Source: Styela clava
Lineage: Eukaryota
Reading direction: 5' to 3'
DNA: 64,000 bases
Assembly: GCF_964204865.1 (NCBI RefSeq)
Contig: NC_135258.1
Coordinates: forward strand, 10,168,001 to 10,232,000
Positions 25,394 through 63,582 of this stretch are shown one piece after another (within the stretch, counting starts at the first letter, position 1; every line of letters begins with the position of its first letter). A program made the position numbers and the translations under genes. The notes beneath the pieces are model-generated. The model was not told the DNA's origin, searched no databases, and saw nothing but the letters and a program-made list of their open reading frames with translations.

Positions 25394-26460
25394 ATGGCTG
25401 ACGCGATAACTCAACAGGAAAAGGATTTGGCGGACAGATTAAAAGCAGCTTGCACACAATATGGAGATGAGATAGTTACCAAACTAAAATAATGTTCGGA
25501 CATTTTATATAAAATGGGTAAATTATATATGCATAAAACGGAAACATCAACAAGTGTGACACAAAAGCTGGGTTTGCTACATTAGCTAGCAACTTACTTA
25601 GGAAGAAGTACAGCTATCTACAGAATATGAAAGAGTGCAAGAATATTTCCGATGATTTGCCGTGATTTGTCAAGTCGTTTTGACAGGCTTGGGTAAAACA
25701 ATCATTCGTAGTGTCGGTGTCAAATCTATCAATGACTTATATTCGGAAGATAAATCGAAAAATTGGTATTATGATATGTTCACAACGAGCGGAGTATGTT
25801 TTGATGGAATGATTCCATATTTCTTGTAATACGCAACTTGGGCGACAAGAACCAACAAAGAAAAGACAACATAAAGTTGAAGTCATTCAACCAGCGAGTA
25901 AGATGGCTTCCTATTTGACGACCGAAGAGCATATCAAGAACGGCAATTATCTCAAAGATATTTTAACCAGGACATGCTTTGTATATGGAGATGAAAAGGT
26001 TTACAACAATTTCAGATAACTGGTCGGAAATATTATTGGAGAAGATATGGACAAGTATTCGATGAAATAGAAAAGAACGGTAATCAGTAAAATTTGACGT
26101 AAAAACGTCTTTTTATCGACCACTTACAGCAATTATTGCATACGCTGCGCGCATTTATAAAATTCCTTCTATAATTCCAGCTTTGATATCCTGACAAAAT
26201 TATATTTTATGTTGCAGAGAGATTTCCATGACACTCAATATGCACTTGCTACTGCCTGCGAACTTAGACTCAAGTTTACGCAGAAGGAGGTTGTCGTGGA
26301 TACAACGTTACGCCAAACTACTTGTACAAATTTATAAGCAAAACATGTGCGGTAAACTGTACAACATACGCACAAGTTTGCTGAAGTTATGCGGGCTTGT
26401 ATCTTAAAACACTTGGGCATTACATCAAATTGTACAATTGAACCGGGTCCTGGTATGTCA
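25394..26460 (+). pseudogene. Pseudogene copy of the nucleotidyltransferase/helical-repeat gene at 53479-56823
   Basis: Begins MADAITQQEKDLADRLKAACTQYGDEIVTKLK* (E33 to TAA at 25490-25492). A large deletion follows TQK. Homology resumes at STEYERVQEYFR*FAVI and continues (SINDLYSEDKSKNWYYDMFTTSGVCFDG) with frameshifts up to IEPGPG. The C-terminal half is absent. Confidence 0.93.
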
Positions 26461-26832: not shown

Positions 26833-27709
26833 GGTATAGCCCATCACACGTAGTTTCTTCTAATTTTCTACTTGGGATATCTGCATCCCAACTTCAACTT
26901 GCCCTCTAAAGTAAAAAAACTCCCTTAACAAATCACGTACATGTTTTTCTTAGCACAAGGATAGATTAATATCAGAAACACTGTACAATTTGTTTACTCA
27001 CGAGTTAATCAACTTGTGTTGAAATTTATCTCCTTATGTTGTGTTGTATTTTTTTTTCATGTTTTCTCGTTCAGTATCGAATCCTTCATATTTAATTAAT
27101 ACATGTACGACTTTCGCTTCGAATAAGGCTTTACGTCCTTTTACATCCTGGGTAAGGTGACGGGCATGGGATTGAACTCGATACTTAATCTACAATACCT
27201 GCATAGTCAAGTCTAACGCTAAATATCCACCGTGCCACCACACAAATTGTCAAAACTCTCATCTTTGAACATATTCTTTAATTAAATATTTTTTTTTTGC
27301 AAATATTTTTTTTTTATCTATGCATTGAGTGACCCGGAGTCGATAGGTAGGGTTATTCCAGTAATATGGGGAGAAGAACACAAGAACAATATCCCATCTG
27401 CGATTGTATCTGGCTTCATGATTCCAAGAATATGAGTCTTTTCAAAATCTGCAATGCACTGTTGATACAAAATGAGAATTTGACGAAGCACCTAAACAAC
27501 TTGCACGAATAGGTGGTGGCCATGAGGTATTTTTAGAGTTGATTGCAGATACACAAATATGTAGTCGACGAAAGTCAGACAACCTTATTTGAAGCCTCCA
27601 AGTATTTCCTTTTGAAAATTGCACTTGCAAAAATACTTTAATTATTAAAAGCTTGTGGCTTAGAAAAAGTAAAATTTTGTCTAAAACGCTGGCGTTTGCT
27701 CGTTTAGTT

Positions 27710-34422: not shown

Positions 34423-36129
34423 TTATTCATTCATTTTCTTAATTAGGTCTCGCTTTGATCTGAGACGACTTTCAACTCCGCCTATAAACTTTTTCTCTTG
34501 TTCGTCGCCCCTCCAATCTTTAACTTTACGGTAGCATTCCAGAGCTACTACGTAATTTTTCTCCGATTCAATGTGGTTGCCGTCTAGGCCGTAAGCTATT
34601 GCTTTATTATTCCACAAATGACCATAAATACGATATTCCTGAGCACCTTCACCAAACTTTTTCTTCATGAAATCAATTCCAATATTGCAATAGTCTATTT
34701 CTTTTTTATATTCTTCGAGAGCACCATACATAGCTGCGATTAAGTTTATACCATATGCCTCTTGAGTGAGTTTCAAAGTTGGTTCAATATCGCGAAAACT
34801 TTGCACGACTGTAAAAAGCTCTAGCAGTATTTCCACCCCAAAATCTTTGGCGATAGCATGCATTTCCTTCCCCTTCTTTTTCATCGAAATTATGATATCG
34901 TAAACTTTCACAGCTCTCTCTCCGTGGAACCTTACAATAGCCACGTCGGGACTCAACTCTATCTTGTACAGTTTAGCCGAACAGAGAATTAAAATTAGAG
35001 CACGAATATATTGGGAATTATCAATATAACTGTTAATCACTTTGTTGACGTCACTCAATTTCGGTCGGTGTGATGACGTCAACATCGTTTCAAGTTCGAT
35101 GATTCTCTTTGTTGCATTCATATTCCGATGAAGTCGGATATAGCATTCTGCCAACATTAGTTGTTGAGTTATGGTCAAAGGTAATTTCTCAAGCATTGAT
35201 GCCGCTTCATGAAATTTTGAGTTTTGAATCAAGTTTCTTGCGGGCTCTGAACAATAAAAGTATTAACGCCAAATAAGATGGAATTATGTTGACAAAGAAC
35301 TCAGTAATTTGCAACTTAGTCACGTTATAAGAATAACTTCGGTATAATGGGAAATTCAAATAGGAATGGCCATTTTCAAATACCTAATGATTTCAGAATC
35401 AAATCGAATATTTTTTTTCCGAATCGGATCTCGAATGCTCGGAAGATATGTTGATGTGTATTTATTATAATGGGTCCTCCAGTTACATAAATTAGTCTAA
35501 CCCTAACATGTAGGTATAAGCTGTGACAGATGTGTCATTTAACATGGACTGCCATACGAAACTTCAAAGTAATCACTCTTCGGGGACCAACAAGTCAAGA
35601 GATTTCCATAAATCAATACCAAGTTTAATTAATGTTTGACGAAATATTAAGGAAATATTTCAAACGTGATTTAATATGATTAGCGTTAAACATACCCAAC
35701 ATTATATTCTGAGCATCGGGCGACAGACTCGTAGCTCCGTTCATTTCAGCAGCGAGATGTGAATTCGGTTGAACTTCGGTGTAAGGCGGTGGTGAATCTA
35801 TAAATAGAAGAACTTGTTTATTTTTATTTTGTACTTTTAAGTAATAACTGAATGAATACTGATTTCATTATAGTGAATAGAAATTGCTGCCAAAAGGTTG
35901 GTGAGGTAGTATTGACGCAAGCATCAGTTTCGATATTTATATTTCTAGAAAAGCCCATACCAAAAGTAACATGATATGTTTTCATTCGTTTGACTATCCG
36001 AAAAGATCCCATGGTATACAGAATAATATGACATATACCTTGATAATCTCCGACATCGTCTACTATGCCAGAATATAATTCTTGTTCAGTAGGAGCAGAC
36101 GGCTCAAGATTCATCTCTTTCTTTGACAT
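34423..36129 (-). CDS. PSAP/PPxY-motif TPR-like protein, copy A (338 aa; exons 36039-36129, 35696-35797, 34423-35246)
   Basis: Two phase-1 GT-AG introns join MSKKEMNLEPSAPTEQELYSGIVDDVGDYQ|DSPPPYTEVQPNSHLAAEMNGATSLSPDAQNIML|EPARNLIQNSKFHEAA... to the 269-aa ORF. The C-terminus has TPR-like helices (YGHLWNNKAIAYGLDGNHIESEKNYVVALECYRK). All three copies share this structure. Confidence 0.88.
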
Positions 36130-38116: not shown

Positions 38117-39733
38117 TTATTCATTCATTTTCTTAATTAGGTCTCGCTTTGATCTGAGACGACTTTCAACTCCGCCTATGAACTTTTTCTCTTGTTCGTC
38201 GCCCCTCCAATCTTCAACTTTACGGTAGCATTCCAGAGCTACTACGTAATTTTTCTCCGATTCAATGTGGTTGCCGTCTAGGCCGTAAGCTATTGCTTTA
38301 TTATTCCAAAAATGACCATAAACACGATATTTCTGAGCACCTCCACCAAACTTTTTCTTCATGAAATCAATTCCAATATTGCAATAGTCTATTTCTTTTT
38401 CATATTCTTCGAGAGCACCATACATAGCTGCAATTAAGTTTATACCATATGCCTCTTGAGTGAGTTTCAAAGTTGGTTCAATATCGCGAAAATTTTGCAC
38501 GACTGAAAAAAGCTCTAGCAGTATTTCTACCCCAAAATCTTTGGCGATAGCATGCATTTCCTTCCCCTTCTTTTTCATCGAAATTATGATATCGTAAACT
38601 TTCACAGCTCTCTCTCCGTGGAACCTTACAATAGCCACATCGGGACTCAACTCTATCTTATACAGTTTAGCCGAACAGAGAATTAAAATTAAAGCACGAA
38701 TATATTGGGAATTAGCAATATAACTGTTAATCACTTTGTTGACGTCACTCAATTTCGGTCGGTGTGATGAAGTCAACATCGTTTCAAGTTCGATGATTCT
38801 CTTTGTTGCATTCATATTCCGATGAAGTCGGATATAGCATTCTGCCAACATGAGTTGTTGAGTTATGGTCAAAGGTAATTTCTCAAGCATTGATGCCGCT
38901 TCATGAAATTTTGAGTTTTGGATCAAGTTTCTTGCAGGCTCTGAACAATAAAAGAACTACCGTCAAACAAACTGGTATTATGTTGAGGAAGAACTCAGTA
39001 ATTTGCAACTTACTCACGTTATAAGAATAGGTTCCGTATAATGGGAAATTCAAATAGGACTGAGCATTCTCAAATACCTCATGATTTCAGAATCAAAACG
39101 AATATTTTTTTTCGAATCGGATCTCGAATGCTCGGAAGATATGTTGATGTGTATTTTTTTTATTGTAATGGGTCCTACAGATACATAAATTAGTCTAACA
39201 CTAACATGTAGGTATAAGCTTGTGACAGATGTGTCATTTAACATGGACTGGCATACGAAAATTCAAAGTAATCACTCTTCGATAATCACAAGTCAAGAGA
39301 TTTCCATAAAGCATTACCAAGTTTAATTAATGCTTGACGAAATATGAAGAAAATATTTCAAACGTGGTTTAATATGAGTAGTGTTATACATACCCAACAT
39401 CATATTCTGAGCTTCGGGCGATAGACTCATAGTTCTGTTCATTTCAGCAGCGAGATGTGGTTGAACTTCGGTGTAAGGCGGTGGTGAATCTATTAATAGA
39501 AGAACTTGTTTATTTTATTTTGTACTTTTAAGTAATAACTGAATGAATACTGATTTCATGATAGTGAATAGAAATTGCTGCCAAAAGGTTGGTGAGGTAG
39601 TATTTACGCAAGCCATAGTATACAAAATATTATGACATATACCTTGATAATCTCCGACATCTTGTACCATGCCAGAACATAATTCTTGTTCAGTAGGAGC
39701 AGACGGCTCGAGATTCATCCCTTTCTTTGACAT
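38117..39733 (-). CDS. PSAP/PPxY-motif TPR-like protein, copy B (336 aa; exons 39643-39733, 39394-39489, 38117-38940)
   Basis: Same exon structure as copy A, with an in-frame 6-nt deletion in exon 2. It differs from A at 9 positions over the 269-aa ORF. Confidence 0.88.
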
Positions 39734-46568: not shown

Positions 46569-48506
46569 TTATTTATTCATTTTCATAATTTGGTCTCGCT
46601 CTGATCTGAGACGACTTTCAACTCCGCCTATAAACTTTTTCTCTTGTTCGTCGCTCGTCCAATCTTGAACTTTGCGGTAGCATTCCAGAGCTACTACGTA
46701 ACTTTTCTCCGATTCAATGTGATTACCCTCTAGGCCGTAAGCTATTGCTTTATTATTCCAAAAATGACCGTAAACACGATATTTCTGAGCACCTTCACCA
46801 AACTTTTTCTTCATGAAGTTAATACCAATATTACAATAGTCTATTTCTTCTTTATATTCTTCAATAGCACCATACATAGCTGCGATTAGGCTTATACAGT
46901 ATGCCTCTTGATTGAATTTCAAAGTTGGTTCAATATCGCGAAAACGTTGCACGACCGAAAAAAGCTCTAGCAGGATTTCCACCCCAAAATCTTTGGCGAT
47001 AGCATGCATTTCCTTCCCCTTCTTTTTCATCGAAATTATGATATCGTAAACTTTCACAGCTCTCTCTCTGTGGAACCTTACAATAGCCACATCGGGACTC
47101 AACTCTATCTTATACAGATTAGCCGAACAGAGAATTAAAATTAAAGCACGAATATATTGGGAATTATCAATATAACTGTTAATCACTTTGTTGACATCAC
47201 TCAATTTCGGTCGGTGTGATGAAGTCAACATCGTTTCAAGTTCGATGATTCTCTTTGTTGCATTCATATTTCGATGAAGTCGGATATAGCATTCTGCCAA
47301 CATGAGTTGTTGAGTTGTTGACAAAGGTAATTTCTCAAGCAATGATGCCGCTTCATGGAATTTTGAGTTTTGAATCAAGTTTCTTGCAGGCTCTGAACAA
47401 TAAATGTATTAACGTCAAATGAGATGAAATTATGTTGACAAAGAACTCAGTAATTTGCAACTTAGTCACGTAATAAGAATAGGTTCCGTATAATGGGAAA
47501 TTCAAATAGGACTGAGCTTTCTCAAATACCTCATGATTTCAGAATCAAATTGAATATTTGTTTTCCGAATCGGATCTCGAATGCTCGGAAGATATGTTGA
47601 TGTGTATTTTTTATTATAAATGGTCCTCGAGACACATGAATTACTATAGCCCTGACCATGTAGTTTCAAGCTTGTGACAGATGTGTCATTTAACATGGAC
47701 AGTTATACAAAACTGCAAAAGTAATCAATCGCTATTCAGGGACTAAGAAGTCAAGGGGTTTCCATAAAACAATACCATTTCAATATTTGCCGAAGTAAGA
47801 AAATATTTCAAAGTGATTCATTACGAGTAGTGTTTAACATACCCAACATCATATTCTGAGCATCAGCCGATAGACTCGTAGCCCCGTTCATTTCTGCAGC
47901 GAGATGTGAATTCGGTTGAACTTCGGTGTAAGGCGGTGGCGAATCTATTAATGGAAAAACTTGTTCATTCTTATGTTGTACTTCTAAGTATTACCTGAAT
48001 GAATACGGATTTCATTATAATGAATGTAAATTTCTGCCAAAAGGTGAAAGCCAGAAATAACAACTGTATTAGGTGCCTTGTCCATCAAACTACCTTTCTT
48101 TACATATTGCATCAATATAAGTCATCACAGTGTGAAATATAAGCTCGGGAAATGCTGAATATTGCTATATAAAAACTGCTAAAGCATATTAATTTGGACT
48201 ATCAGTTCAATGGAAAATGGACAGCATGATGCCTATAAAGGTAGAAATCATGATTTGAACAACTGAAATAAGAGGTTTTTAAAAAACTTCTTTGTCTCAA
48301 AAACAATTACATTATTCGACAATCTCATACAGTTTTAGAGGTAATATTGACGCAAGCATTAATTTTGTCACTATCTAAAAATATCCCATGGTATACAGAA
48401 TAATATGACATATACCTTGATAATATCCGACATCGTCTACCATGCCAGAATATAATTCTTGTTCAGTAGGAGCAGACGGCTCAAGATTCATCTGTTTCTT
48501 TGACAT
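46569..48506 (-). CDS. PSAP/PPxY-motif TPR-like protein, copy C (338 aa; exons 48416-48506, 47843-47944, 46569-47392)
   Basis: MSKKQMNLEPSAPTEQELYSGMVDDVGYYQ|DSPPPYTEVQPNSHLAAEMNGATSLSADAQNMML|EPARNLIQ... The most divergent copy, with all splice sites intact. Confidence 0.88.
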
Positions 48507-51500: not shown

Positions 51501-53089
51501 TGAACAAAACAGGCAAAAAAAACTTGATTTGAAACAATTGTTTTAAAACAATTCTTTTTGAACAAATTCCTATTTATAAGCCGTCGCCATTAACGCTGGT
51601 ACGCAAAAAAGTTGTTTGGGTTCTTGTAAAAACTGCAATCTTTTTTACTTCCACTACTAAATTAATTTTATTTTGGGCGAAGTGACCTGTAACCAAAATA
51701 GCTAAACGTTCCATATCGCAGACAGGGCATTGTTACGCACCAATCGTTTGCAGCGACAAAAGTTAGCGGATCCCCAAAAACAGAAACTGCGGTTTCGATT
51801 CCTTTGCTCTGACTCAATAGCGACACCGCGTGTCCTATCACTAATTAACTAATAACTCGCTAATTATACGTCATAATTAATCCAAAATCAATAGGCATGA
51901 ACTTTAATCCGAGATATGATGAATTAAGATGCAAAACTTGAAGCAGATTCAACTCGCTTTTGTGAGATATCGCGTGTGTCTAACAGACTAACAAATAGAC
52001 AAATACCTATCAACGTAATTACCGATCGTAATCGATAAGTAATGAGCAAAATCGGAATAGAATTATGTCCCAACCCTAACCTGGTATACACACACTACGA
52101 GAGTACCCAAACTTCGTTAAATACTCATTCTTTATCAACAGTGCGTTGCAGATTTTGAAAAGACTCATATTTTTGGAATCATGAAGCCAGACACAATCGC
52201 AGATGGGATAATGTTCTTGTGTTCTTCTCCCCATATTACTGGAATAACCCTACCTAACCCTCGACTTCGGGTCACTCAATGCATAGTCTATTTAATAATT
52301 ACAAACAAGGTTATATTAAATTGATTAAGTTTGATAAAAATGATATTTGCAATAAAATAATATGTAATTAAAGATTATGTCCAAAGTTGAGAGTTTTGAC
52401 AATTTGTGTAGTGGTACAGTGAACAAAATGTTATATGTAACTATGCGGGTTAATTCATTGGGTTTGAATCTCATGCCTTACCCAGGATGTATTACGTTGA
52501 GTAGGTCCGATCCAAACTAGAGTAGCTACTTACCTAACCATGGTTTCTTGTGTCAAACCTTATTCGATTCGAAAGGCGTATAAATGCGTAGTTTAAACAT
52601 GTATTAAACCTGAAAATATAGGATTTGATACCGAACGAGAAAACATGCTAAAGAATACAACACTACGTAGGCAACCAAATTCCTATGGCATTAAGACAAT
52701 TGCGATTCACAGTTAATCCTACGTAGCCGATTTGTCTAACACAAATTGGTAAACTTGTGAGTGAACAAGTAGTACAGTATTAGTTATTGACCTATTCTTA
52801 AGTGCTAAGAGAAACGTAAAGGTAATTCGTTGAGGGATTTGATTTACTTTAGAGGGCTGGTTGGAGCCTATATTTTCTGTCTCGTGCTTTGAGTAGGGAT
52901 GCGGATATCTTGAGTAGAAAATTAGAAGAAACTACAAGTGATGAGCTATAACTAATGACAGTGTTAAAAATATAAGTATTTTGTCACGTGTATAGTATAC
53001 GGATGGAACATTTCAATAGTGCATAGGTCAAGTGATTGTTTAAGAAAGTAACGAGTCGTGTTGAGTCAGTGCATATAATAAAAATGTTA

Positions 53090-53306
53090 GCGCTCCCGTA
53101 GTATGAGAACCAAGAAGGCGGACACCGGAACATAATATGTGTACCAGGTTAGAGTTGGGCGATAATGTTGTTCCAATGTTCCCTATTTTAATCCTATTAC
53201 GAGTTCGGGGACCGTAGTGATTGTATCTGAAATTATGGCCTATATGCTGGTACACATACTGCGTTCCGGTGTCCGCCATCTTGGTTCATATACCACGGAA
53301 GTACCA
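53090..53306. repeat. Family A MITE-like repeat downstream of the NTase gene
   Basis: Palindromic ends (gcgctcccgtagtatgagaaccaagaaggcggacaccggaac / gttccggtgtccgccatcttggttcatataccacggaagtacc) flanked by AAAATGTT direct repeats. Confidence 0.8.
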
Positions 53307-53478
53307 AAATGTTTTACTTAATATATATATATTGTTATTGAACTTATGGCAATCACGAAAGTAGATTCGGAAAGCAAATCACAATGGTATTTATGTTATA
53401 TTTCGACACCATACGTTCATATATCAATTTTCATAATAGTATATACAGTATATATGATTTATCTGGCGATATTCTATT

Positions 53479-56400
53479 CTACGTAAGTGAAAATGAAGGT
53501 ATCGCTGAAGTTGGATCTTCCATTTCCATCTTATTGTCCAGGGCAATATAACCCTCCCAAAAGTTTGGTACTGTATAACCATTATCCATTTTAAAAATCA
53601 CTGTGTGGTTTAACATTACCATAGATCTGATTTTCAGCATTCTGGTCGTATTTTGAGAGTTAATAACTTTCCAGAATGATTTTGCAGCACTTGTGTATCG
53701 GGACTTGTAAAAAGCATCAATGCCAGTGCTGAAGGTGGATGAAACATTGCTGAGTACGTTCCCAGAATGACTTTGAATTGCTGTTGAAACGAATGTACGC
53801 AGGCAATTGTTTACCCATACGCAAATGTTGCCGTAGAGTATGTCAATCAAATAGCGAACGTTGTAATTCTTAACATCACCATTCCGGAGATCCGCATGTA
53901 ACAATTTCCAAAAGTAGTTGACGCTTTTAGAGAAATCAAATGTTTCCATTTCAGAACTTAAGGCCGGCATAGAAATGAAAGAATTAGATTCCACTTTCAT
54001 TGTTTCCCAAAGGTTTTGTTTATTTGTCTGTATCATAAGTTTTGAGAGGGATTTTCGAATGACGTAAGATTCCGTAAGGTCACGCAGCAAACCTAGAATA
54101 TGTGCATGGGTAAAATGGTGACGAAAAATATTTACAATTTTCCACAATCTGCTTGAGTACTTCAGTATCTCGCCTGCAATCATTTTATCAAGATAACGAC
54201 GCAAAAGTGAAGAGAAAGTCGTCATAATGACAAATTTTAAACGACCATCATTTTGCACTTCATTCGGAGATTCAGAAAAAACCTGAATAAATAAATCAAC
54301 ATCGAATTCTTCCATGCGACGAATGTCGATTTTTAACAGCAAATAAATTGCACTATTGTAACGAAAGTTGTTCAATTTATCATCTTGTGGATTTCTACAT
54401 ATTTCAAGTGCTCTGTTAATAAGATCTGACCTAGTGGATGCATCAGTTTCTTTATCAGCTACTTTTAAAAGACAAATCATCTTCATTAGGTCCATTCCAT
54501 CTTTTGCTGTTATTTTCCCCACAATTCCCATTTGCGATTCCTGAATTACATCTGTGGCTTTTAATGTGTAATATCCGTCTTCAAATAAGTCTTGGCCAAC
54601 TTGTGTGCACAATATAGTTTCAGAAAATTCTATCAACATGGGTTTCCCAATTTTCTTACACCCTCGTTCGATTGAGTCGTTTAAAACATCACGTAAACCT
54701 TGCGCTCCACATTCCAGCATATCCATATTTAACTGAGCTATTGCCACCCCAAGTCGAAATGCTAAATTCGAATATATATCATCGTATTTTAATAATTCCT
54801 CCTTACACAATTCAAGCATTTCTTCCGGCGCCATGACTTGCTCCATGGATACAGCCTCATCGGTACGAATCATCAGCATACTTCCACCAAAATCGAAGTA
54901 CCAGCTTGCAATTTCTTTGTCAGCCATGCTTCTTTCGAACCAAATTTTATGAATTTTCATCAATTCGCTTCGTCTGTCTTGGTCTTCATATATATTAGAC
55001 AGCAAACCACAAGCATTTGTAATTTTAAGATTATCTTCAGAATGTTCGATGATTTTTAACAGTCTCTTTTCAGTTGTTTCTAACCATTCTTCTGAAGGCG
55101 ATATCCCGAGTCTGCTGTTCTCCATGAGAACAGAATGAATGCGCCATATTTCTAGTTTTTCGGTTTTAAAATTGGACATATCAGTCAGTTCTTTTTCTAG
55201 AGATGTGAGCGCATCGTCATATTCACTCAAAAACATCAAGGCTGGAGTGATTCCACTTGATATACCAGGTCCCGGTTCGATTGTACGTTTTGATTTAATG
55301 CCCAAGTGTTTCATAATGTAAGCCCGCATAACTTCAGCAAACTTGTGCGTATGTTGTAGACAGTTTACTGCACATTTCTTGCTTATAAATTTGTATAAGT
55401 CGTTTGGCGTAACTTTGTATCTACGACAACCTCCTTCTGCGTAAACCTTGAGTCTAAGTTCGCAGGCAGTAGCAAGTGCATATTGAGTCTCATGGAAATC
55501 TCCCTCAAACATAAAATCTAATTTTGACAAGATATCAAAGCTAGAATTGGAAGAAATTTTATAAATGCGCGCAGCGTATGCAATCAGTGCTGTAAGTGGT
55601 CGATAAAAAGACGTTTTCACGTCAAATTTCACGGATTCGTGGAGAACCCAAGTTGTTCCGGTTACGCCCACGTTAACGTTCTTTTCTATTTCATCGAATA
55701 CCTCTTTATATCTTTTTCTATCCATTTCTTCTCCGATAACATTGCCGACAAGATATCTGAAATTGTTGTAAACCTTTTTATCTCCATATACAAAGCATGT
55801 TCTGGTTAAAATATCTTTCAGATAGTAGCCATTCTTGATATGCTCTTCTGTCGTCAAATAGGAAGCCATCTTACTTGCTGGTTGAATGAGTTCAACTTTA
55901 TGTTGTCTCTTTTTTGTTGGTTCTTGTCGCCCAAGTGGCGTATTACAAGAATGAGGAACCATTCCATCAAAACATACTCCGCTTGTTGTGAACATATCAT
56001 AATACCAATTTTTCGATTTATCTTCCGAATATAAGTCATTGATAGATTTGACACCGACACTACGAATGATTGTTTCACCCAAGCCTGTCATTACGACTTG
56101 AAAAATCACTGCGAACCATCGGAAATATTCTTGCACTTTTTCATATTCTGTAGATTGCTGTACTCCTTCCTCCAGCACAATGACATGTTCAAAATCAGAA
56201 TAAAGTGTTATTTCTTCGCGGGTTAAAGATCCTAGCCCAACGATTGCAAAAGCACACGGTGGATCCCCAAGAATATCTATGCAATTTCTGGCTATGTACT
56301 GCATTAAATGTTTAAAATGACTCGTAGTATTTTTCATAAGTTTGTGAATGGATTGAATTCTCTCCTTCTGTTTACGGTGAATTTCAGATTCAGTCAAATC

Positions 56401-56823
56401 TTCCTCAATCAATTCTAAAGTTTCAATGGAATTTCTCTCTAAGCCACGAAATAGTTTGAATCCTCTGTAGATATTTTTAGAAAGATTATCAACACTGATA
56501 TCTTGATTTGCGGCGTTGGATGCTGCTAATAATCTGGCATCCAATAATTTCAAAACCGGTTGTAGATTTTCAATACCTTCTGTGTCTGAAATTATTTCAA
56601 ACCTTACTCTTGCCCCATGTAGCAATGTAGCACTTTTAATAAAATCCATCTTTTGTGTCATACCTGTTGATGTTTCCGTTTTATCCATATATAATTTACC
56701 CATTTTATATAAAATGTCCGAACATTCCTTTAGTTTGGTAATTCTCTCATCTCCATAAGGTGTGCAAACTGCTTGTAAGCTGTCCGCCAAATCTTTCTCC
56801 TCTTGAGTTATCGCGTCAGTCAT
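53479..56823 (-). CDS. Intronless 1114-aa protein: DUF294/GlnD-GlnE-like (Pol-beta superfamily) nucleotidyltransferase, helical substrate-binding domain and long helical/TPR-like C-terminus
   Basis: Uninterrupted 3345-nt ORF. Motif CAFAIVGLGSLTREEITLYSDFEHVIVL (aa ~190-217) fits hGS-x-x-R-x-E-x4-SD-x-[DE]. FDVKTSFYRPLTALIAYAARIYKISSNSSFDILSKL (aa ~399-435) resembles the DUF294_C/GlnE helical domain. The ORF is certain; the domain call comes from motif recognition. Confidence 0.85.
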   Translation of the reverse strand: MTDAITQEEKDLADSLQAVCTPYGDERITKLKECSDILYKMGKLYMDKTETSTGMTQKMDFIKSATLLHGARVRFEIISDTEGIENLQPVLKLLDARLLAASNAANQDISVDNLSKNIYRGFKLFRGLERNSIETLELIEEDLTESEIHRKQKERIQSIHKLMKNTTSHFKHLMQYIARNCIDILGDPPCAFAIVGLGSLTREEITLYSDFEHVIVLEEGVQQSTEYEKVQEYFRWFAVIFQVVMTGLGETIIRSVGVKSINDLYSEDKSKNWYYDMFTTSGVCFDGMVPHSCNTPLGRQEPTKKRQHKVELIQPASKMASYLTTEEHIKNGYYLKDILTRTCFVYGDKKVYNNFRYLVGNVIGEEMDRKRYKEVFDEIEKNVNVGVTGTTWVLHESVKFDVKTSFYRPLTALIAYAARIYKISSNSSFDILSKLDFMFEGDFHETQYALATACELRLKVYAEGGCRRYKVTPNDLYKFISKKCAVNCLQHTHKFAEVMRAYIMKHLGIKSKRTIEPGPGISSGITPALMFLSEYDDALTSLEKELTDMSNFKTEKLEIWRIHSVLMENSRLGISPSEEWLETTEKRLLKIIEHSEDNLKITNACGLLSNIYEDQDRRSELMKIHKIWFERSMADKEIASWYFDFGGSMLMIRTDEAVSMEQVMAPEEMLELCKEELLKYDDIYSNLAFRLGVAIAQLNMDMLECGAQGLRDVLNDSIERGCKKIGKPMLIEFSETILCTQVGQDLFEDGYYTLKATDVIQESQMGIVGKITAKDGMDLMKMICLLKVADKETDASTRSDLINRALEICRNPQDDKLNNFRYNSAIYLLLKIDIRRMEEFDVDLFIQVFSESPNEVQNDGRLKFVIMTTFSSLLRRYLDKMIAGEILKYSSRLWKIVNIFRHHFTHAHILGLLRDLTESYVIRKSLSKLMIQTNKQNLWETMKVESNSFISMPALSSEMETFDFSKSVNYFWKLLHADLRNGDVKNYNVRYLIDILYGNICVWVNNCLRTFVSTAIQSHSGNVLSNVSSTFSTGIDAFYKSRYTSAAKSFWKVINSQNTTRMLKIRSMVMLNHTVIFKMDNGYTVPNFWEGYIALDNKMEMEDPTSAIPSFSLT

Positions 56824-59800
56824 ATCTAATCTGTTTTAACGCTGTATATATGTAGAGATATTCATATACAATGTAATTAATAGTAAGAACTTAAATTTAG
56901 ACTAAAAGCAATTATGAAAGCTAATCACACAGTCCTGTCATCTACATAACAAAATACAAGAAGTGATACGTAGGCCTATATTGGAATCCCATTCAACAAG
57001 TAAATTTCGTTTATTCACTACATAACAATTCAGTCTGGGTAAGGGTAAGAAATCGAACACTTCACACCAACGCTTTATTATGTGTGCCTATTCGGGCGTA
57101 TCACGAAAACTGCAATCCATTTTACAACATTTTGTGTAAATTTCATCAAACTAACTTAACAAATAACAACTGGTTGAAAAAGGGAAATACCATATTGTAA
57201 ATTACCATTTAACAAATATGAAAAAGAATTGTTGTTTACCCTACATCCAACGCTTGAACTCATAAACCTCATAACAACATAGGCCTCAAAAGGCGATATA
57301 AAACTTAGTGGTCCAAAACTAGAACGCTTGAGAGTCTCGATAAATATAAGAACAGTAAAAAAGACATAGAATTTGAGCATTACACAACACCGCGTAGGCT
57401 TTACGTATGTCCGTTTATTCAGGTCTTCGGGTCATATTCTTTTATTTATTAGCAAACAGAAAACTACTGACAGATGACATTTTTATTATTTATTGACTAA
57501 ACTAGCCTACGCTAGGGTCTTTTGTGTTTGATCTACAATTGAAGTGTAGCGTCGTTAGATATATATAATCTGTAAAAAACTTTACACATCATTTGGTACC
57601 TTAAGTATTCTTACGGCTGTGGAGTTATAGATAAGTTCCAAAATCAGATTACAGATGCACAATGAAATTCTATCTCCGACTTCCGAACGTGCAAAAAACG
57701 ACTCCGATTTAAAGTCGGCACATCATGTTGAGCGTTGAAAACAAGCTTGGTACCACTCGCCGCCTATTTACCTGTGTGACTTCGTAGGTTTAATACTTGT
57801 AGCCGCATATTTGTTGATATAACTCTGGTCAGTTAGGGTTTCCACAGTCAAGTCTATGTATCTGGAATGGCTACCTGGTCAACTATTTTTCATGGTTAGG
57901 CAGTCGTCCCCTTCCATGAGATAAATATAAAAATCCGTTCCACACTGTTGCAGAAATTTTCGATTAAGTTGAATTTTAAATTGCTGTAACATATTCTGGA
58001 TACCACCTTCCTGCTTGGCTCCAAAATAAGACCATCTCCTGACAAAGTGTGCAGTCGAGCAGGCGCCACAAATCTTGCTTTAGGAACTCTGGCAATAGAA
58101 GTGACCAATATTTTTAGACTTTTTTTAAATTTCTCACTAACGAATAGTGCATTGCTAGCGCCATGGGCTTCTCGAACTTAGAAACATTTGGGAGTGTCGG
58201 TAGCTACCATGGACCTTTCAAAACAGCTCATGTCGCTGATTCAAAGTTTTCAAAACCCTGATATTGTATCAATATCTGCGTTCCACGTATCTGTGACTGA
58301 AATTAAATATATATATAGTAATTTGTCGCTCAGTGCATATACTGTACACAATCTCAGAAGTCTTTACCACATTGACTCGTTTATTCAAACTTTTTAGTTA
58401 GTTCCACTAGGTACTGTAAATTTATAATACGTGTAAAAGAGGCGATACTGTATCGACCATAGCGCATCTCGCACGTGGAATAAACTTTATTTTGAAAGAT
58501 CAATATAAGCGACATTTGTCTATTGCACACCGTTCCGGTGACATCATTAAATTTCGAATGGTATATATTCTGGTTTAAATAGCAACGGGAACTGGTGAGG
58601 ATTTGACTGAAAGAATATAATAGTTACTGCTACGAGTCGAAATAATAATATAATACCATTATTATTCACACTGAATATTTTTGTTGACAAACTTTATACA
58701 TTTCACGTTAATTCAGAGATCGGTCGTCTGCGATGTCCTATTTCAGGAAACATGTCTTTCTATCATAACGGTATCAAGGTTAGTGTATCGAAAACGCAGT
58801 AATTGTCATCGCTGAAGTTGTCAAAATTGCGGGTGTTTACTTGTTTGGTTGTCTTACTTAGATAGGTGCTCACTGTTTTTCCATAAGAAAGATTGATAGT
58901 CCAGAGGACAGGCCTAGGACAGACTTGAGCTGTATTTAGAAATATCCTTAGTGTAACAATTAATGTCAAATTTACAAGAAATAGATGCATTTCTAATATT
59001 ATATAGTAAAAAAAGGATATTTTCTTTTTATAGCTTCTTTCATTGTTGGCTACATAATGGTTTTAATTATTTAAAAATTATCGAAGTAGTTAAATATGCA
59101 TGCAACTGCTTTCGTTGTTATAGTTGAACTATATATAAGAAGTACCGAAATATATTTGTATTTGTGCAGAAATACTCTTTAGTCACTTAGGAAACGAAAA
59201 TGTGATGTGAAATTACCGCCTAAACTTCTTGGATAATGCCAAACAAAAATATGATGTGAAATTTTTATGTTTTTTTCTTCTTTCAAATTAGCCTGTATGA
59301 CGCAGAAGGAAACTTTTGCCGGACGCGTTTAGTCAAAATTGAAAACTCATTCAATTTTCAACAAAGCACGTACAGAGGTATGTCTCATTCAAAATAGGGC
59401 AGCGGTTCCCGAAGGTTGCGTCGCGGCGCATTAGTGTGTATATAAATCAATAAATTTATTTTCCTCTTCGTTGTCGTTTACTTCCTGTTACGTAGTGTCT
59501 GCCTTTATTCTTACATAATAATAGAGGGAAAAACTACCTGGTGCCATTTCGCGAGCTGCAGTTCATATAACTACTGAAACGAGTTTAGCGAATATGGGTG
59601 ATTTTGTTAGCATTTTGAATGAAAATCGAGCAGAGATGAGGAAGAAGAGTTGACCTTTTGCCTTTATTCCTTATGCCTACGTGTTTACAAACTTTCTAAT
59701 GCATACAGTACACATTAGCGATAACAAAATTGAGCTTTATTTGAAAAGCTGCATTTTTTTCGTGCAAGTGCGCCGTGAGTTTTTGTCCGTTATAATTTGG

Positions 59801-60081: not shown

Positions 60082-63000
60082 ATGGAGAAGTTCAGTGAAA
60101 AAGTGGTGATCATAACAGGTGAATGGCAATAGCTTTCTGCGTTATAGTAATCTAAAATTATTATTTCTCGACAAACTCGAGCGTTTTTTTCGAGTATAAT
60201 TATTTGACGTAAATGGAGTTTTATGATAGGCAGTGCGAGTGGACTTGTGGAAATGTTCTGAAACGTTAGGCACATGCTTTGAAAAAAAATGTAAAAAGGG
60301 CATAAAACAGTATAATATTTGACTTACTGATTTACAGTATTATTTAACACGACACCATGATGCTCAGCTGCTCGCTCGCATGGGTTCGCCAAATTTGAAC
60401 TTTTTTTCAAGGCAAAAGATAATTTACGATGATTAATTATAGGCATACAGCATTACTACAAAAAACTGAAATTTAATCGTTGTTCAACACATGGGCCAAT
60501 ATTTTTATAAATTGATCCAGTTGCGAAATCACTTTCCCCAAATCATACCAGCTCATACATTAGAGAGTTGGTTAATTTCGAAAACTTATATGAGCCTGCC
60601 GCTACAGGTCTTTTTTGTTCGTTTTTATTTCTACAACAGGTGCATCAAGTGGAATAGGAGAGGCCACTGCCGTTGCCTTTTCAAAACAAGTGGCAAAATT
60701 AACAATTTGTGGAAGAAACAAAGAAAGACTAGAAGAAACTGCTAAAAAATGTAGAGATAATGGCGCAGAGGTTTGTCAACTATGTAAACTATTAAATTCA
60801 AAGTAACTAAAACAATGAACGTTATAAAAGAGTCGCTAATGAATTAGAGTGGAAACTAATCGACTTAAGCGCAGTTCAACTTTTCTGCTCATAGTATAAA
60901 AATATCACAAAAGAACTATACCTTTGTTTAAAATGAATATGACGAATTTTAGGTTTTACAAATAGTTGGAGATCTATCAAAGTTTGAAGAATTGAAACCC
61001 GTGATCGATATAACAGTTAGCAAGTTTTCCAGAATTGATATCTTGATAAACAACGCGGGTCGCCTGGAACATTGTCCAATTTCTGAAGTAAGTTGTGTTT
61101 GTATCTTATAGCAATAGTTGCAATATGTTGTGTGCGAAAAGATTGATTTGGAAATAGGTCTTTACTGTAGATTCGAGTAACTTTCAACCACCGAATTTTA
61201 AAAGAATGTGCTCAATGCGCGACACACACAATGTTATTTTACAAGTCAATTTCATGCATGATTCTATGATATTTCGAGAATAAAACCAAAACGAGAAAGA
61301 ACTCTGATCACAGGATTTCGTGCCCACCCCCAAGAATCGAACATTCCCAATTTCGATATTGATTTTTGAATACAATTGTATAAATTTATGGTTTCAAACG
61401 AATTCTAATTTATCTGTTACATGAAATATTTCAATCACATTGTGCAATAATATATTGACGGATTTTCGACAACACAAGATCCAGTGTTCTTTTTAAAATG
61501 GGTTAGATTAGAGATATTCCCAAATGCATGTCAAATTGTACAAAAGGAATTTAGACGGTGACTACAAATTAACTTTAACATTTCTAATTTATTTATTTAT
61601 CATATTTTAGCTCCAGCTTGATTTATTTGAAGATTTGTTTGCGATTCTTGTTCGTGCACCTGTTTTTCTTTGTAAATATGCATTGCCTCACCTTAAAGAG
61701 ACAAAAGGTAAAATAACAATTTTATTCAACCAAAAACTTTCGAAGATTTTTTTCAGTATTTGCTTGTATTTTTTAGGTTGCGTGGTCAATGTGTCAAGTA
61801 CAGCAAGTCTCAAAACATTTCCTTTGACATTCAATGTGTCGTATGAAATGTTTAAAGCAGCGTTAGACAATTTCACAAGAGGGTTTTCAGCAGGTGTGTG
61901 GAATGAATAAAGCTAACGTTCATTTGGGGACATGAAAAAATTATCGCTAGGGACAAAAGTCATAAATAAAACAATTAAAATCAATCTAATGACACAGGTA
62001 ATATACCTTAGAATATAACAACTTGTTGTTCGTTGAATGGTGGACCATACCAATCACCGACGCATGAAAAGGTATTTAGCAAGTGTGGAACTGCGATAAA
62101 TTATATTAAATCTGGTTGGTCATTGAGAAATTGTTTGTGGCTTTTTAGCTAAATAATGCCCTGTAAAAAAAAGTTATGGCGGTTCACAGTTCTAAGAAAT
62201 TCTGGTTCAACTCGGTTTAATATTATTAATTCATAAAACAACAGTAAAATCTTACTAAGATGATAACAAGATTGCCCTACCATATATACTACTCATCTTT
62301 AACTAATTTCATTTAGGTGTTACTGTTAGATAATTTTTTATAGTTATGTATTTTATCCAATTGTTCGCTTATTATCAACATTTTGTTTTTCAGAATGTGC
62401 TTCATATGGCGTTCGTGTTAACAGCATCAAGTAAGATATTTTTATACCTATATATTTGAAATTATTTTTGATCTTCCGATCATTTTGTTTCAAAAACGAA
62501 AAAAAACGAGTCAGTCGTAATTAATGAGGTATTTGAATAATTGAGAAGTAGAGTTTTTCGGAGATTGTATTACAACAAAAGTATGACGTCAGTAAAAACC
62601 ATAAATCACGTTAAAAGTAATATCAGAATATTAAAAACATCTTAAAAAAAACAGGCACATTCCGAAATGGCACGTAGCCTGATGTGCCAACTCTAATCCG
62701 AAGTTTAAAAATATGAAAATTGAAAGTATAAAGCGAATTGCGTTTCTAACATTATTTACCCAGCCCAACATTATTTACCCAATTATTTTAGTCCTACATA
62801 CGGAGTTATATTCATCAATATTGATAGAAGGAAATCTTGACCCACTCCATTCAATTTATCTCCTTCAATTCAAACTGCTCTCATTTTTTGACCAAACAGT
62901 CCAGGTGTTGTGAAAACGAGACTTGTTGAAAATTCAAAATACACAAAAGAGCAATTTGAGAAGGTTAGTTACGTTGCTGTGATATCCACATGAGTTTATC

Positions 63001-63582
63001 CATAAAGTGATTACAGGGAGTTGGCCTTGTTGCAACACTGAAAGTCTGCATGAGATTATTTTTGGTGCCTTTTCTGAATGATAATATCAAATTTTTGTTC
63101 CATTTAACAGTCACTTGCATTATACTATACCTATGTAAGTACTTAACTTGTATAAAGGAGAAAGCAGCTATACATCATGCCATAAATCATTTCTAAACAC
63201 AATTGACGAAATATTGAAATAAATGAATTGAAAGTAGGTTGAAATCTAAATATTTCATGCATATATGCATTGAATGCTTGTATTTTATATTGCATATTTT
63301 CAATAAATTTCCGACGAGGATCGTGTAATATATTCGAATAATCGACATGCTTATTGACGGCGGAACTGTATGAAACACTATACACGTGAAAGAATAACAA
63401 AGAATGATATTATAAACATTATATATTTTATCATCTTTCAGATTATGGAAAATTTCAGTAAAATTCACAAGCTTGGATTTATGGAACCAGAAACTATAGC
63501 TGATGGAATAGTATTTTTATGTTCTTCGTCTCACATTACTGGTATAATGCTGCCGGTAGACTCCGGATCTTTGAACGCTTGA
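60082..63582 (+). CDS. Classical SDR (FabG-like SDR-2), 8 coding exons, complete
   Basis: Exons approximately 60082-60118, 60640-60770, 60953-61087, 61611-61707, 61777-61893, 62394-62430, 62900-62963, 63443-63582. Motifs: VIITGASSGIG, LINNAG, VNVSS, YEMFK, GVRVNSINPG, PETIADGIVFLCS, ITGIMLPVDSG. Intron positions match SDR-1. Confidence 0.92.

Follow-up and report, generated by a model that had tools for sequence, protein, structure and literature searches.

A multi-copy family of ascidian genes, intronless in Styela clava, with a predicted GlnE/DrrA-type nucleotidyltransferase module and relatives in intracellular bacteria

Introduction

Glutamine synthetase receives AMP on a tyrosine from GlnE (AMPylation), and GlnD attaches UMP to a PII tyrosine; GlnD carries HD and ACT domains, and canonical bacterial DUF294 proteins carry cyclic nucleotide monophosphate (cNMP)-binding and CBS domains. 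Transferases of the GlnE and DrrA types are regarded as bacterial enzymes. DrrA/SidM of Legionella pneumophila AMPylates Tyr77 of Rab1 (PMC8097203), and the DrrA family has been reported to be confined to Legionella (PMC4454073). In animals, Fic enzymes and SelO are the sole AMPylase classes that have so far been identified, according to a 2021 review (PMC8097203). Here, a gene of the ascidian Styela clava is described, which resides in a window of 64,000 nucleotides (the whole stretch of DNA that was analysed; contig NC_135258.1, positions 10,168,001 to 10,232,000) and which codes for a protein of 1114 amino acids (aa) with a predicted nucleotidyltransferase (NTase) module of the GlnE/DrrA type. 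On the basis of structure models and comparative analyses we consider it probable (roughly 0.6) that the product is a protein NMPylase, i.e., an enzyme transferring nucleoside monophosphates (NMP) to proteins, most probably an AMPylase, that is guided by tetratricopeptide repeats (TPRs) and originates from the transfer of a whole gene. S. clava has at least 19 such intronless paralogues, this gene included.

With respect to the systems already described, GlnE (PDB 1v4a, 3k7d) has two tandem NTase modules, one deadenylylating and one adenylylating, and acts on glutamine synthetase under the control of PII, whereas the ascidian protein has one module, no match to Pfam families of GlnE and a TPR-like tail, and is therefore not a GlnE. 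A likeness to DUF294 and GlnD proteins is given by a Pfam DUF294 match above threshold and a weak match to NCBIfam PII-uridylyltransferase models over the same motif; however, cNMP-binding, CBS, HD and ACT domains were not found in it by Pfam, and it is thus not a GlnD. In DrrA/SidM (PDB 6yx5, 3nku) the AMPylation domain is followed by a guanine nucleotide exchange domain for Rab1 and by P4M, which binds phosphatidylinositol 4-phosphate, whereas in the ascidian protein, which shares 10-12% sequence identity with DrrA and gave no direct sequence match to it, a TPR-like solenoid takes this place; the latter protein is thus not a DrrA/SidM proper. FICD/HYPE (Fic fold) and SelO (pseudokinase fold) have the same predicted chemistry, in which ATP supplies the AMP for a hydroxyl group of a protein, but unrelated folds and catalytic machinery. 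Finally, the NEX2 proteins of Neochlamydia have an F-box, sometimes an OTU domain, then DUF294 and then TPRs (Domman et al. 2014, PMC4209131).

The gene and its transcription

The minus strand of the window contains, at 53479-56823, an uninterrupted open reading frame (ORF) of 1114 codons with its ATG at 56823, which according to the ORF list is by far the longest of the 64-kb window and the sole ORF of at least 150 aa in its region. An annotated S. clava protein, LOC120339477, has the same length and is 99% identical over 100% of the query, and therefore the annotated coding sequence (CDS) is a single exon, as had been claimed in the original prediction and as is also borne out by collinear contigs (see below). 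The parts of the gene are as follows:

53479..56823, minus strand: single-exon CDS of 1114 aa, LOC120339477 (ORF list; 99%-identical annotated protein; contigs of three transcriptome-sized runs collinear and without joints)
56419..56823, minus strand: N-terminal helical cap, aa 1-135, with TPR/14-3-3-like hairpins, belonging to the conserved 465-aa module
55774..56391, minus strand: predicted Pol-beta nucleotidyltransferase core, aa 145-350, with a long helix, the beta1-G-S loop, beta2 with D-x-E and a family-specific insert with D286 and PLGRQ (Pfam DUF294 at aa 157-239; folds of DrrA and GlnE; conservation)
56188..56232, minus strand: catalytic motif G198-S199-X10-D210-F-E212, i.e., G-X11-D-X-E (translation; conservation; motif definition in PMC8097203)
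55966..55968, minus strand: D286 in GVCFDG, probable third metal-binding carboxylate (translation; 100% conserved in both sets; F285 in a beta-bridge of the model)
55294..55728, minus strand: predicted helical HEPN/KNTase_C-like (DUF294_C-type) substrate-binding domain, aa 366-510
53524..55266, minus strand: fast-diverging TPR-like alpha-solenoid tail, aa 520-1100 (AlphaFold2 model; Foldseek; paralogue identity; omega)
52425..56838, minus strand: span tiled by transcriptome-sized runs, probable transcript with a very short 5' leader and a 3' untranslated region (UTR) of about 1 kb (contigs of runs X1, X3 and X5)

The three runs in question come from two studies, are presumed to be RNA and have contig sets of 53-79 Mb, as compared to a genome of 377 Mb. 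Their contigs tile positions 52425-56838 collinearly with the genome and without any joint within the ORF. On the 5' side they end at 56838, 56830 and 56814, respectively, and in all three runs coverage is zero at 56975-57900 (five bins), a stretch for which the genome-sized run X8 has contigs. This pattern is as expected from an intronless transcript of about 4.4 kb, and the gene is probably expressed. Spliced-leader trans-splicing is common in ascidians, and the AG dinucleotides located upstream of the ATG at 56843-56842 and 56832-56831 may be compatible with it.

The nucleotidyltransferase module

The sole Pfam family matched by the protein is DUF294 (PF03445; aa 157-239, 31.3 bits vs. a cut-off of 21), which was matched in all 40 of the 40 family members compared. 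The NCBIfam models for PII-uridylyltransferase stay below threshold, with 11-12 bits where 631-799 would be required, and their matches do not extend beyond the motif; in UniRef, the ascidian relatives bear the title 'Protein-PII uridylyltransferase N-terminal domain-containing'. An AlphaFold2 model of aa 1-520 built on 40 relatives reached a predicted local distance difference test (pLDDT) score of 89.5 and a predicted template modelling score of 0.91, and the only four Foldseek matches of this part with E ≤0.001, all with a probability of 1.00, are to the AMPylation domain of DrrA and two NTase domains of GlnE. As judged from the model, the module begins with a helical cap (aa 1-135), to which a Pol-beta core and then a helical domain resembling HEPN/KNTase_C are joined, an arrangement which has been described for GlnE and DrrA (PMC3710099). 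An NTase core followed by a KNTase_C/HEPN-like domain that can be superposed on solved members, as is characteristic of the GlnE/DrrA-type adenylyltransferase fold, is thus found here as well. Both Pfam and the structure comparison accordingly uphold the GlnE/DUF294-type NTase of the original prediction.

The other Pfam families that had been anticipated did not appear in the protein itself: DUF294_C (PF10335) gave no match at E up to 10, and in aa 501-1114, which had no significant match, the best TPR family (TPR_7) reached an E of 0.15. Ten of the 40 relatives do match DUF294_C (best E 2.6e-6). Likewise, SidM_N (PF20879) has no match in the 1114-aa protein and is found in 14 of the 40 relatives at E up to 0.01, one of which (P0120) passes the curated cut-off with 29 vs. 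27 bits.

The motif of the GS-ATase/DrrA branch of the Pol-beta superfamily, G-X11-[D/E]-X-[D/E] (PMC8097203), is present as G198-X11-D210-X-E212 in the segment GSLTREEITLYSDFE (translation of 56188-56232, minus strand), and the second segment of interest, GVCFDG, is the translation of 55963-55980 (minus strand). For 188 eukaryote-like and 62 bacterial modules that were aligned to the family hidden Markov model (HMM), conservation was as follows (eukaryotic / bacterial, in %):

G198: 100 / 100
S199: 99 / 100
S209: 99 / 100
D210: 99 / 100
E212: 98 / 100
D286: 100 / 100
E250: 100 / 98
K403: 99 / 98
R408: 99 / 95
R457: 99 / 98

As E212 is conserved in 98-100% of the modules, the glutamate at the position of the second acid is the invariant state of the family and not a lesion; while the original prediction was right about the residue, its implied deviance is not upheld, the signature being well within the published motif (PMC8097203). 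The structure matches also include entries for ANT(4') that are titled 'E52D mutant', which is consistent with a functional D-x-E elsewhere in the superfamily. The acid that had been surmised in GVCFDG corresponds to the fully conserved D286; it adjoins F285, a beta-bridge residue in the AlphaFold2 model, and from this position a role as third metal-binding carboxylate is probable. Given the intact metal- and NTP-binding residues and the predicted fold, the enzyme is probably active.

The tail

The long helical-repeat tail that had been proposed for the C-terminal part is recovered by an AlphaFold2 model based on 14 paralogues, which is all-helical with about 29 helices and, at a pLDDT of 71.5 and with a shallow alignment, of moderate confidence. 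Foldseek matched it only to TPR superhelices (CTR9, IFT-A, IFIT5, subunits of APC/C, OGT), with a probability of 1.0, and we take it to be a TPR-like solenoid in degenerate form. When 11 Styela paralogues were compared, they had a mean identity of 0.50 over the module but of 0.20 over the tail. Selection was assessed by Nei-Gojobori pairwise dN/dS (omega) in five intact, recent tandem paralogues (cluster C10:7583000-7635500), where the module has an omega of 0.24-0.37 and the tail one of 0.33-0.71. Purifying selection acts on both, although less strictly on the tail. Within some of these tandem pairs the dS values of module and tail disagree (e.g., 0.28 vs. 0.15; 0.08 vs. 0.22), a pattern that points to gene conversion or to recombination amongst the tandem copies.

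A family of ascidian genes

A six-frame search of the S. clava genome found at least 18 uninterrupted frames in addition to the query, i.e., at least 19 intact frames in total, of about 740-1210 aa (mostly about 1100) and on eight contigs. Besides the intact copies the genome contains several broken ones, of which one is located in the window itself:

25394..26454, plus strand: decayed, internally deleted pseudogene copy of the NTase gene (own-genome search; ORF fragments)

In this copy, at about these positions, segments corresponding to about aa 1-68 and 218-496 can be recognised with 63-72% identity and many stop codons, and the stretch bearing the GS...DxE motif is missing; judged from its sequence, it shows a local duplication followed by loss.

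An exhaustive phmmer search with aa 1-520 against 1.84 billion cluster representatives resulted in 1351 matches at E ≤0.001, 378 of them at E ≤1e-30, and delimits a conserved unit of about aa 5-465. In two protein searches every named match was ascidian (Styela clava, Ciona intestinalis and Clavelina lepadiformis, and thus all three ascidian orders), and amongst the remaining animal phyla these searches did not yield any homologue with a name. The neighbours in the ESM Atlas are given as 'Eukaryota, commonest Chordata'. In most of the relatives the module is followed by canonical TPR_12/TPR_10 arrays.

Six eukaryote-like relatives of 1295-3112 aa (P0069, P0070, P0072, P0127, P0154 and P0009) carry two or three complete modules in tandem, and the three modules of P0069 have identical scores; these multi-module proteins may be real, or they may be tandem genes that were merged by gene prediction.

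In a tree of 96 modules (IQ-TREE, LG+C20; 48 eukaryote-like and 48 bacterial rows) the Styela paralogues are monophyletic (support 99), as are the Ciona paralogues (99), and the expansions are therefore lineage-specific. The Clavelina sequences interleave with unlabelled eukaryote-like ones. As far as sequence comparisons can tell, each ascidian lineage has had its own, independent expansion of the family, in which genes were duplicated in tandem and copies were born and died.

Relatives in intracellular bacteria and the direction of the probable transfer

When 185,579 genomes of bacterial and archaeal species were scanned with motif patterns, the patterns derived from tunicates only did not find any relative. 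With patterns that also cover two divergent matches (P0067 and P0068), 64 loci were found, which, by their record titles, belong overwhelmingly to obligate intracellular lineages or their relatives. The alphaproteobacterial carriers include Holosporaceae, Rickettsiaceae ('Candidatus Megaera', 'Tisiphia'), Midichloriaceae, other Rickettsiales and metagenome-assembled genomes (MAGs) of Alphaproteobacteria; the others include Parachlamydiaceae, Rhabdochlamydiaceae, and Amoebophilaceae together with related small-genome Cytophagales/Bacteroidota, besides one MAG of Gammaproteobacteria and a few loosely labelled MAGs. Three of the loci (L012 and L035 with frames of 2743-2813 aa, and L057 with 773 aa) are family members in environmental MAGs that are labelled 'Rickettsia typhi', a label which looks doubtful.

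The bacterial frames are about 900-2800 aa long at these loci, and up to about 3000 aa amongst the matches counted per genome, and contain the complete module, with profile E-values down to 1e-68 and 23-34% identity, and there are 3-19 matches per bacterial genome of 1.1-3.6 Mb. In most of the bacterial proteins scanned TPR_10/TPR_12 arrays come after the module, at times together with a UIM; in one of them the TPRs are replaced by a methyltransferase domain. A giant virus as the source is not supported, as viral contigs did not contain any relative. One Holosporaceae genome also harbours a second, more divergent DUF294 subfamily (L065, L067, L069 and L070), which aligns to about HMM positions 133-241 and 292/320-460 and is much shorter at the place where the main family has the insert with D286 and PLGRQ.

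NEX2 and the relatives from Rickettsiales, Holosporaceae and Amoebophilaceae are homologous to the ascidian family over the module of about 460 aa, which is followed by repeats, and like the ascidian family they are multi-copy. However, the bacterial proteins are larger, have canonical TPR_10/TPR_12 repeats and often an F-box, OTU, UIM or methyltransferase domain, whereas the Styela subfamily has a degenerate solenoid and none of these extras. In the tree of 96 modules all 48 eukaryote-like rows are found on one side and all 48 bacterial rows on the other side of a branch of length ~1.0 with a support of 100, and P0067 and P0068 are placed among the Rickettsiales. To judge by these sequences, the ascidian family is a sister group of the endosymbiont family and not a member of NEX2, as F-box and OTU are absent from the 1114-aa protein and the tunicate sequences form a separate clan on a long stem. 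The tree shows, at the level of sequence, that the tunicate family arose once and is akin to the endosymbiont family, and a transfer between intracellular bacteria and the ascidian lineage is strongly indicated. The original prediction of a horizontal acquisition or retroposition is thus sustained with regard to bacterial affinity and the lack of named homologues in other phyla, but an isolated acquisition or a retrogene does not agree with at least 19 intronless paralogues and a distribution over three ascidian orders.

As to the direction, a transfer from a bacterium to a tunicate ancestor is moderately favoured because the wider GlnE/GlnD/DUF294/DrrA superfamily is otherwise bacterial (PMC3710099, Table 1), because ascidians are the only named eukaryotes, and hence the only named animals, with the family, because all Styela copies lack introns, and because the bacterial branches are deeper, more diverse and spread over at least three phyla. 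These points speak at the same time against the reverse scenario, in which the tunicate family would be native and intracellular bacteria would have taken the gene from a eukaryote, as does the range of hosts of the carrier bacteria, amongst which, going by the titles of the records and the papers cited, protists and arthropods predominate and not tunicates. In favour of the reverse scenario, endosymbiont effectors often carry parts of eukaryotic origin such as F-box, OTU and UIM, and UIM as well as published F-box/OTU fusions occur in this very NTase-TPR family (PMC4209131). When a tree of 68 rows was rooted with the divergent Holosporaceae DUF294 subfamily, the tunicates fell among the bacterial lineages with 85% support in the Shimodaira-Hasegawa-like approximate likelihood ratio test; however, a tree in which the ingroup bacteria are kept together is 5.3 log-likelihood units better (approximately unbiased, AU, test, p 0.64). 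This result, by allowing the bacteria to be monophyletic, speaks for the reverse scenario, and it tells against any particular donor or direction being read from the tree. With an alternative at least as good, the rooted tree is not taken as a proof of direction: the phylogeny that had been called for upholds kinship to endosymbiont bacteria but no particular direction. All in all, we regard the reverse transfer as unlikely.

Proposed function

The following picture is proposed. The protein would be cytosolic and consist of four parts, with aa 1-510 making up a complete adenylyl- or nucleotidyltransferase module of the GlnE/DrrA type, in which G198-S199, D210-x-E212 and D286 would bind Mg-NTP and the HEPN-like helical domain would bind the substrate. 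An NMP, most probably AMP, would then be transferred to a protein hydroxyl, and the variable solenoid of about aa 520-1100 might select the target or a ligand, or might gate the enzyme. The whole gene would have moved from an intracellular bacterium to a tunicate ancestor and would subsequently have been expanded in tandem in each ascidian lineage. NMPylation of a protein is the most likely chemistry because in each of the three solved relatives that are closest to it, AMP or UMP is passed on to a protein tyrosine.

This reading of the gene as a protein NMPylase draws on the ORF, its probable transcription, the predicted fold, the conservation of residues, the distribution of the family and purifying selection. 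Several points have to be weighed against it. Searches of the PDB by sequence, with the protein as well as with a profile of 40 family members, gave nothing relevant, and the link to DrrA and GlnE therefore rests on predicted structure and Pfam. From such models and comparisons we infer catalysis, the choice of nucleotide and a protein substrate, and likewise the role of the tail, for which the model has the moderate confidence mentioned above, the direction of transfer and any immune function. The contigs tiling the gene fix neither the ends nor the strand of a transcript, with the RNA label of the runs being presumed. Many of the eukaryote-like matches are sequences from ENA, JGI and Logan without an organism, so that the restriction to tunicates rests on the named matches. 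A role in immunity or conflict would fit birth and death of copies, tandem clusters, pseudogenes and fast-evolving tails; however, Death, TIR and CARD domains were absent from the seven N-terminally extended eukaryote-like relatives scanned, and pairwise dN/dS in the five tandem copies did not reveal any gene-wide omega >1. In the light of these two results such a role is unsupported.

Three other functions were considered, each of which is less well supported than protein NMPylation. According to the first, which was also raised in the original prediction, the protein would synthesise a second messenger or oligonucleotides in the manner of cGAS, OAS or CD-NTases, with the TPR tail as activating sensor. 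cGAS and OAS do belong to the same Pol-beta superfamily, a repeat tail joined to an NTase resembles a sensor-effector layout, and IFIT-like TPR proteins are amongst the generic matches of the tail, but the closest folds are those of protein AMPylases, and we consider this function improbable. To the same degree improbable is a nucleotidyltransferase for small molecules or RNA 3' ends, similar to ANT/KNTase, LinB or MNT, in view of the protein substrates of the three closest solved relatives. Somewhat less probable still is a catalytically dead scaffold, i.e., a TPR adaptor in which an NTase-shaped domain would be kept for binding only: the tail accounts for more than half of the protein and its activity is a prediction, but the residues expected to bind metal and NTP are conserved to 98-100% in 250 modules from two domains of life, and the module is under purifying selection (omega 0.24-0.37). 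Finally, bacterial contamination or an assembly artefact, which the unbroken, bacterial-style ORF and its bacterial relatives might suggest, is rejected, as the contig with the ORF is at least 21.6 Mb long and the ORF has exon fragments of animal genes and a miniature inverted-repeat transposable element (MITE) of the host around it, has the same G + C content as its flanks (0.35-0.37), is present in runs of four independent studies and has its paralogues, at least 19 with itself, on eight contigs and in a eukaryote-only clan with a long stem.

Other features of the window

The 3' UTR of the probable transcript harbours a repetitive element:

53080..53314, strand not assigned: MITE-like high-copy element within the 3' UTR (inverted-repeat arms; word depth; run X1 skips 53119-53295)

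Its inverted-repeat arms of 75 nt are 79% complementary, and it has a word depth of thousands, with a maximum of about 84,000 that was reached in the genome-sized run. Positions 53119-53295 are missing from a contig of run X1, and the insertion is therefore polymorphic. Other copies of the element in the runs abut telomere-like repeats of the CCCTAA type.

Short exon-like ORFs with weak matches to adh_short/adh_short_C2 (E about 0.004) are located at 61635-61910 (plus strand), 63370-63582 (plus strand) and 27318-27491 (minus strand). Two of the three, on either side of the region, share near-identical C-terminal peptides, and they are probably parts of two paralogous, intron-split short-chain dehydrogenase genes. 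In addition, three ORFs on the minus strand (34423-35232, 38117-38926 and 46569-47378) have an equal length of 269 aa and TTG as first codon; these neighbours did not match any Pfam family, and BLAST did not reveal a similarity to the NTase protein (E 0.23).

Conclusions

The fold, the chemistry and, from Neochlamydia, the endosymbiont architecture were already known, whereas the family in ascidians appears to be undescribed, and so do the DrrA-like structure of its members and the fact that they are akin exclusively to endosymbiont proteins. A literature search found no paper linking DUF294 or uridylyltransferase genes with tunicates. Amongst the screens for horizontal gene transfer in ascidians (PMC13390645, PMC7540406), the main text of a 2026 screen of Ciona has eight gene groups and not this family, and the genome paper of S. 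clava names only cold-shock genes as candidates.

It is conceivable, though we put it forward tentatively as something less than evenly probable, that ascidians possess a third, hitherto unrecognised class of animal AMPylases or NMPylases, of the DrrA/GlnE type. At the base of the ascidians or tunicates these enzymes would have been acquired in their entirety from intracellular bacteria, where they belonged to an effector family, and would then have been amplified into dozens of lineage-specific, intronless and TPR-guided paralogues acting in host-microbe conflict or in cell regulation. If true, post-translational signalling in animals would gain a new class of enzymes, and this in the invertebrates most closely related to the vertebrates, with Ciona and Styela as tractable systems in which the substrates of these enzymes might be found. 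The exclusive kinship to multi-copy proteins of intracellular bacteria (Rickettsiales, Holosporaceae, Chlamydiota, Amoebophilaceae) would also clearly exemplify an exchange of genes with a chordate lineage. Moreover, protein NMPylation would offer itself as a hypothesis for what the large, uncharacterised family of effector-like proteins does in endosymbionts.

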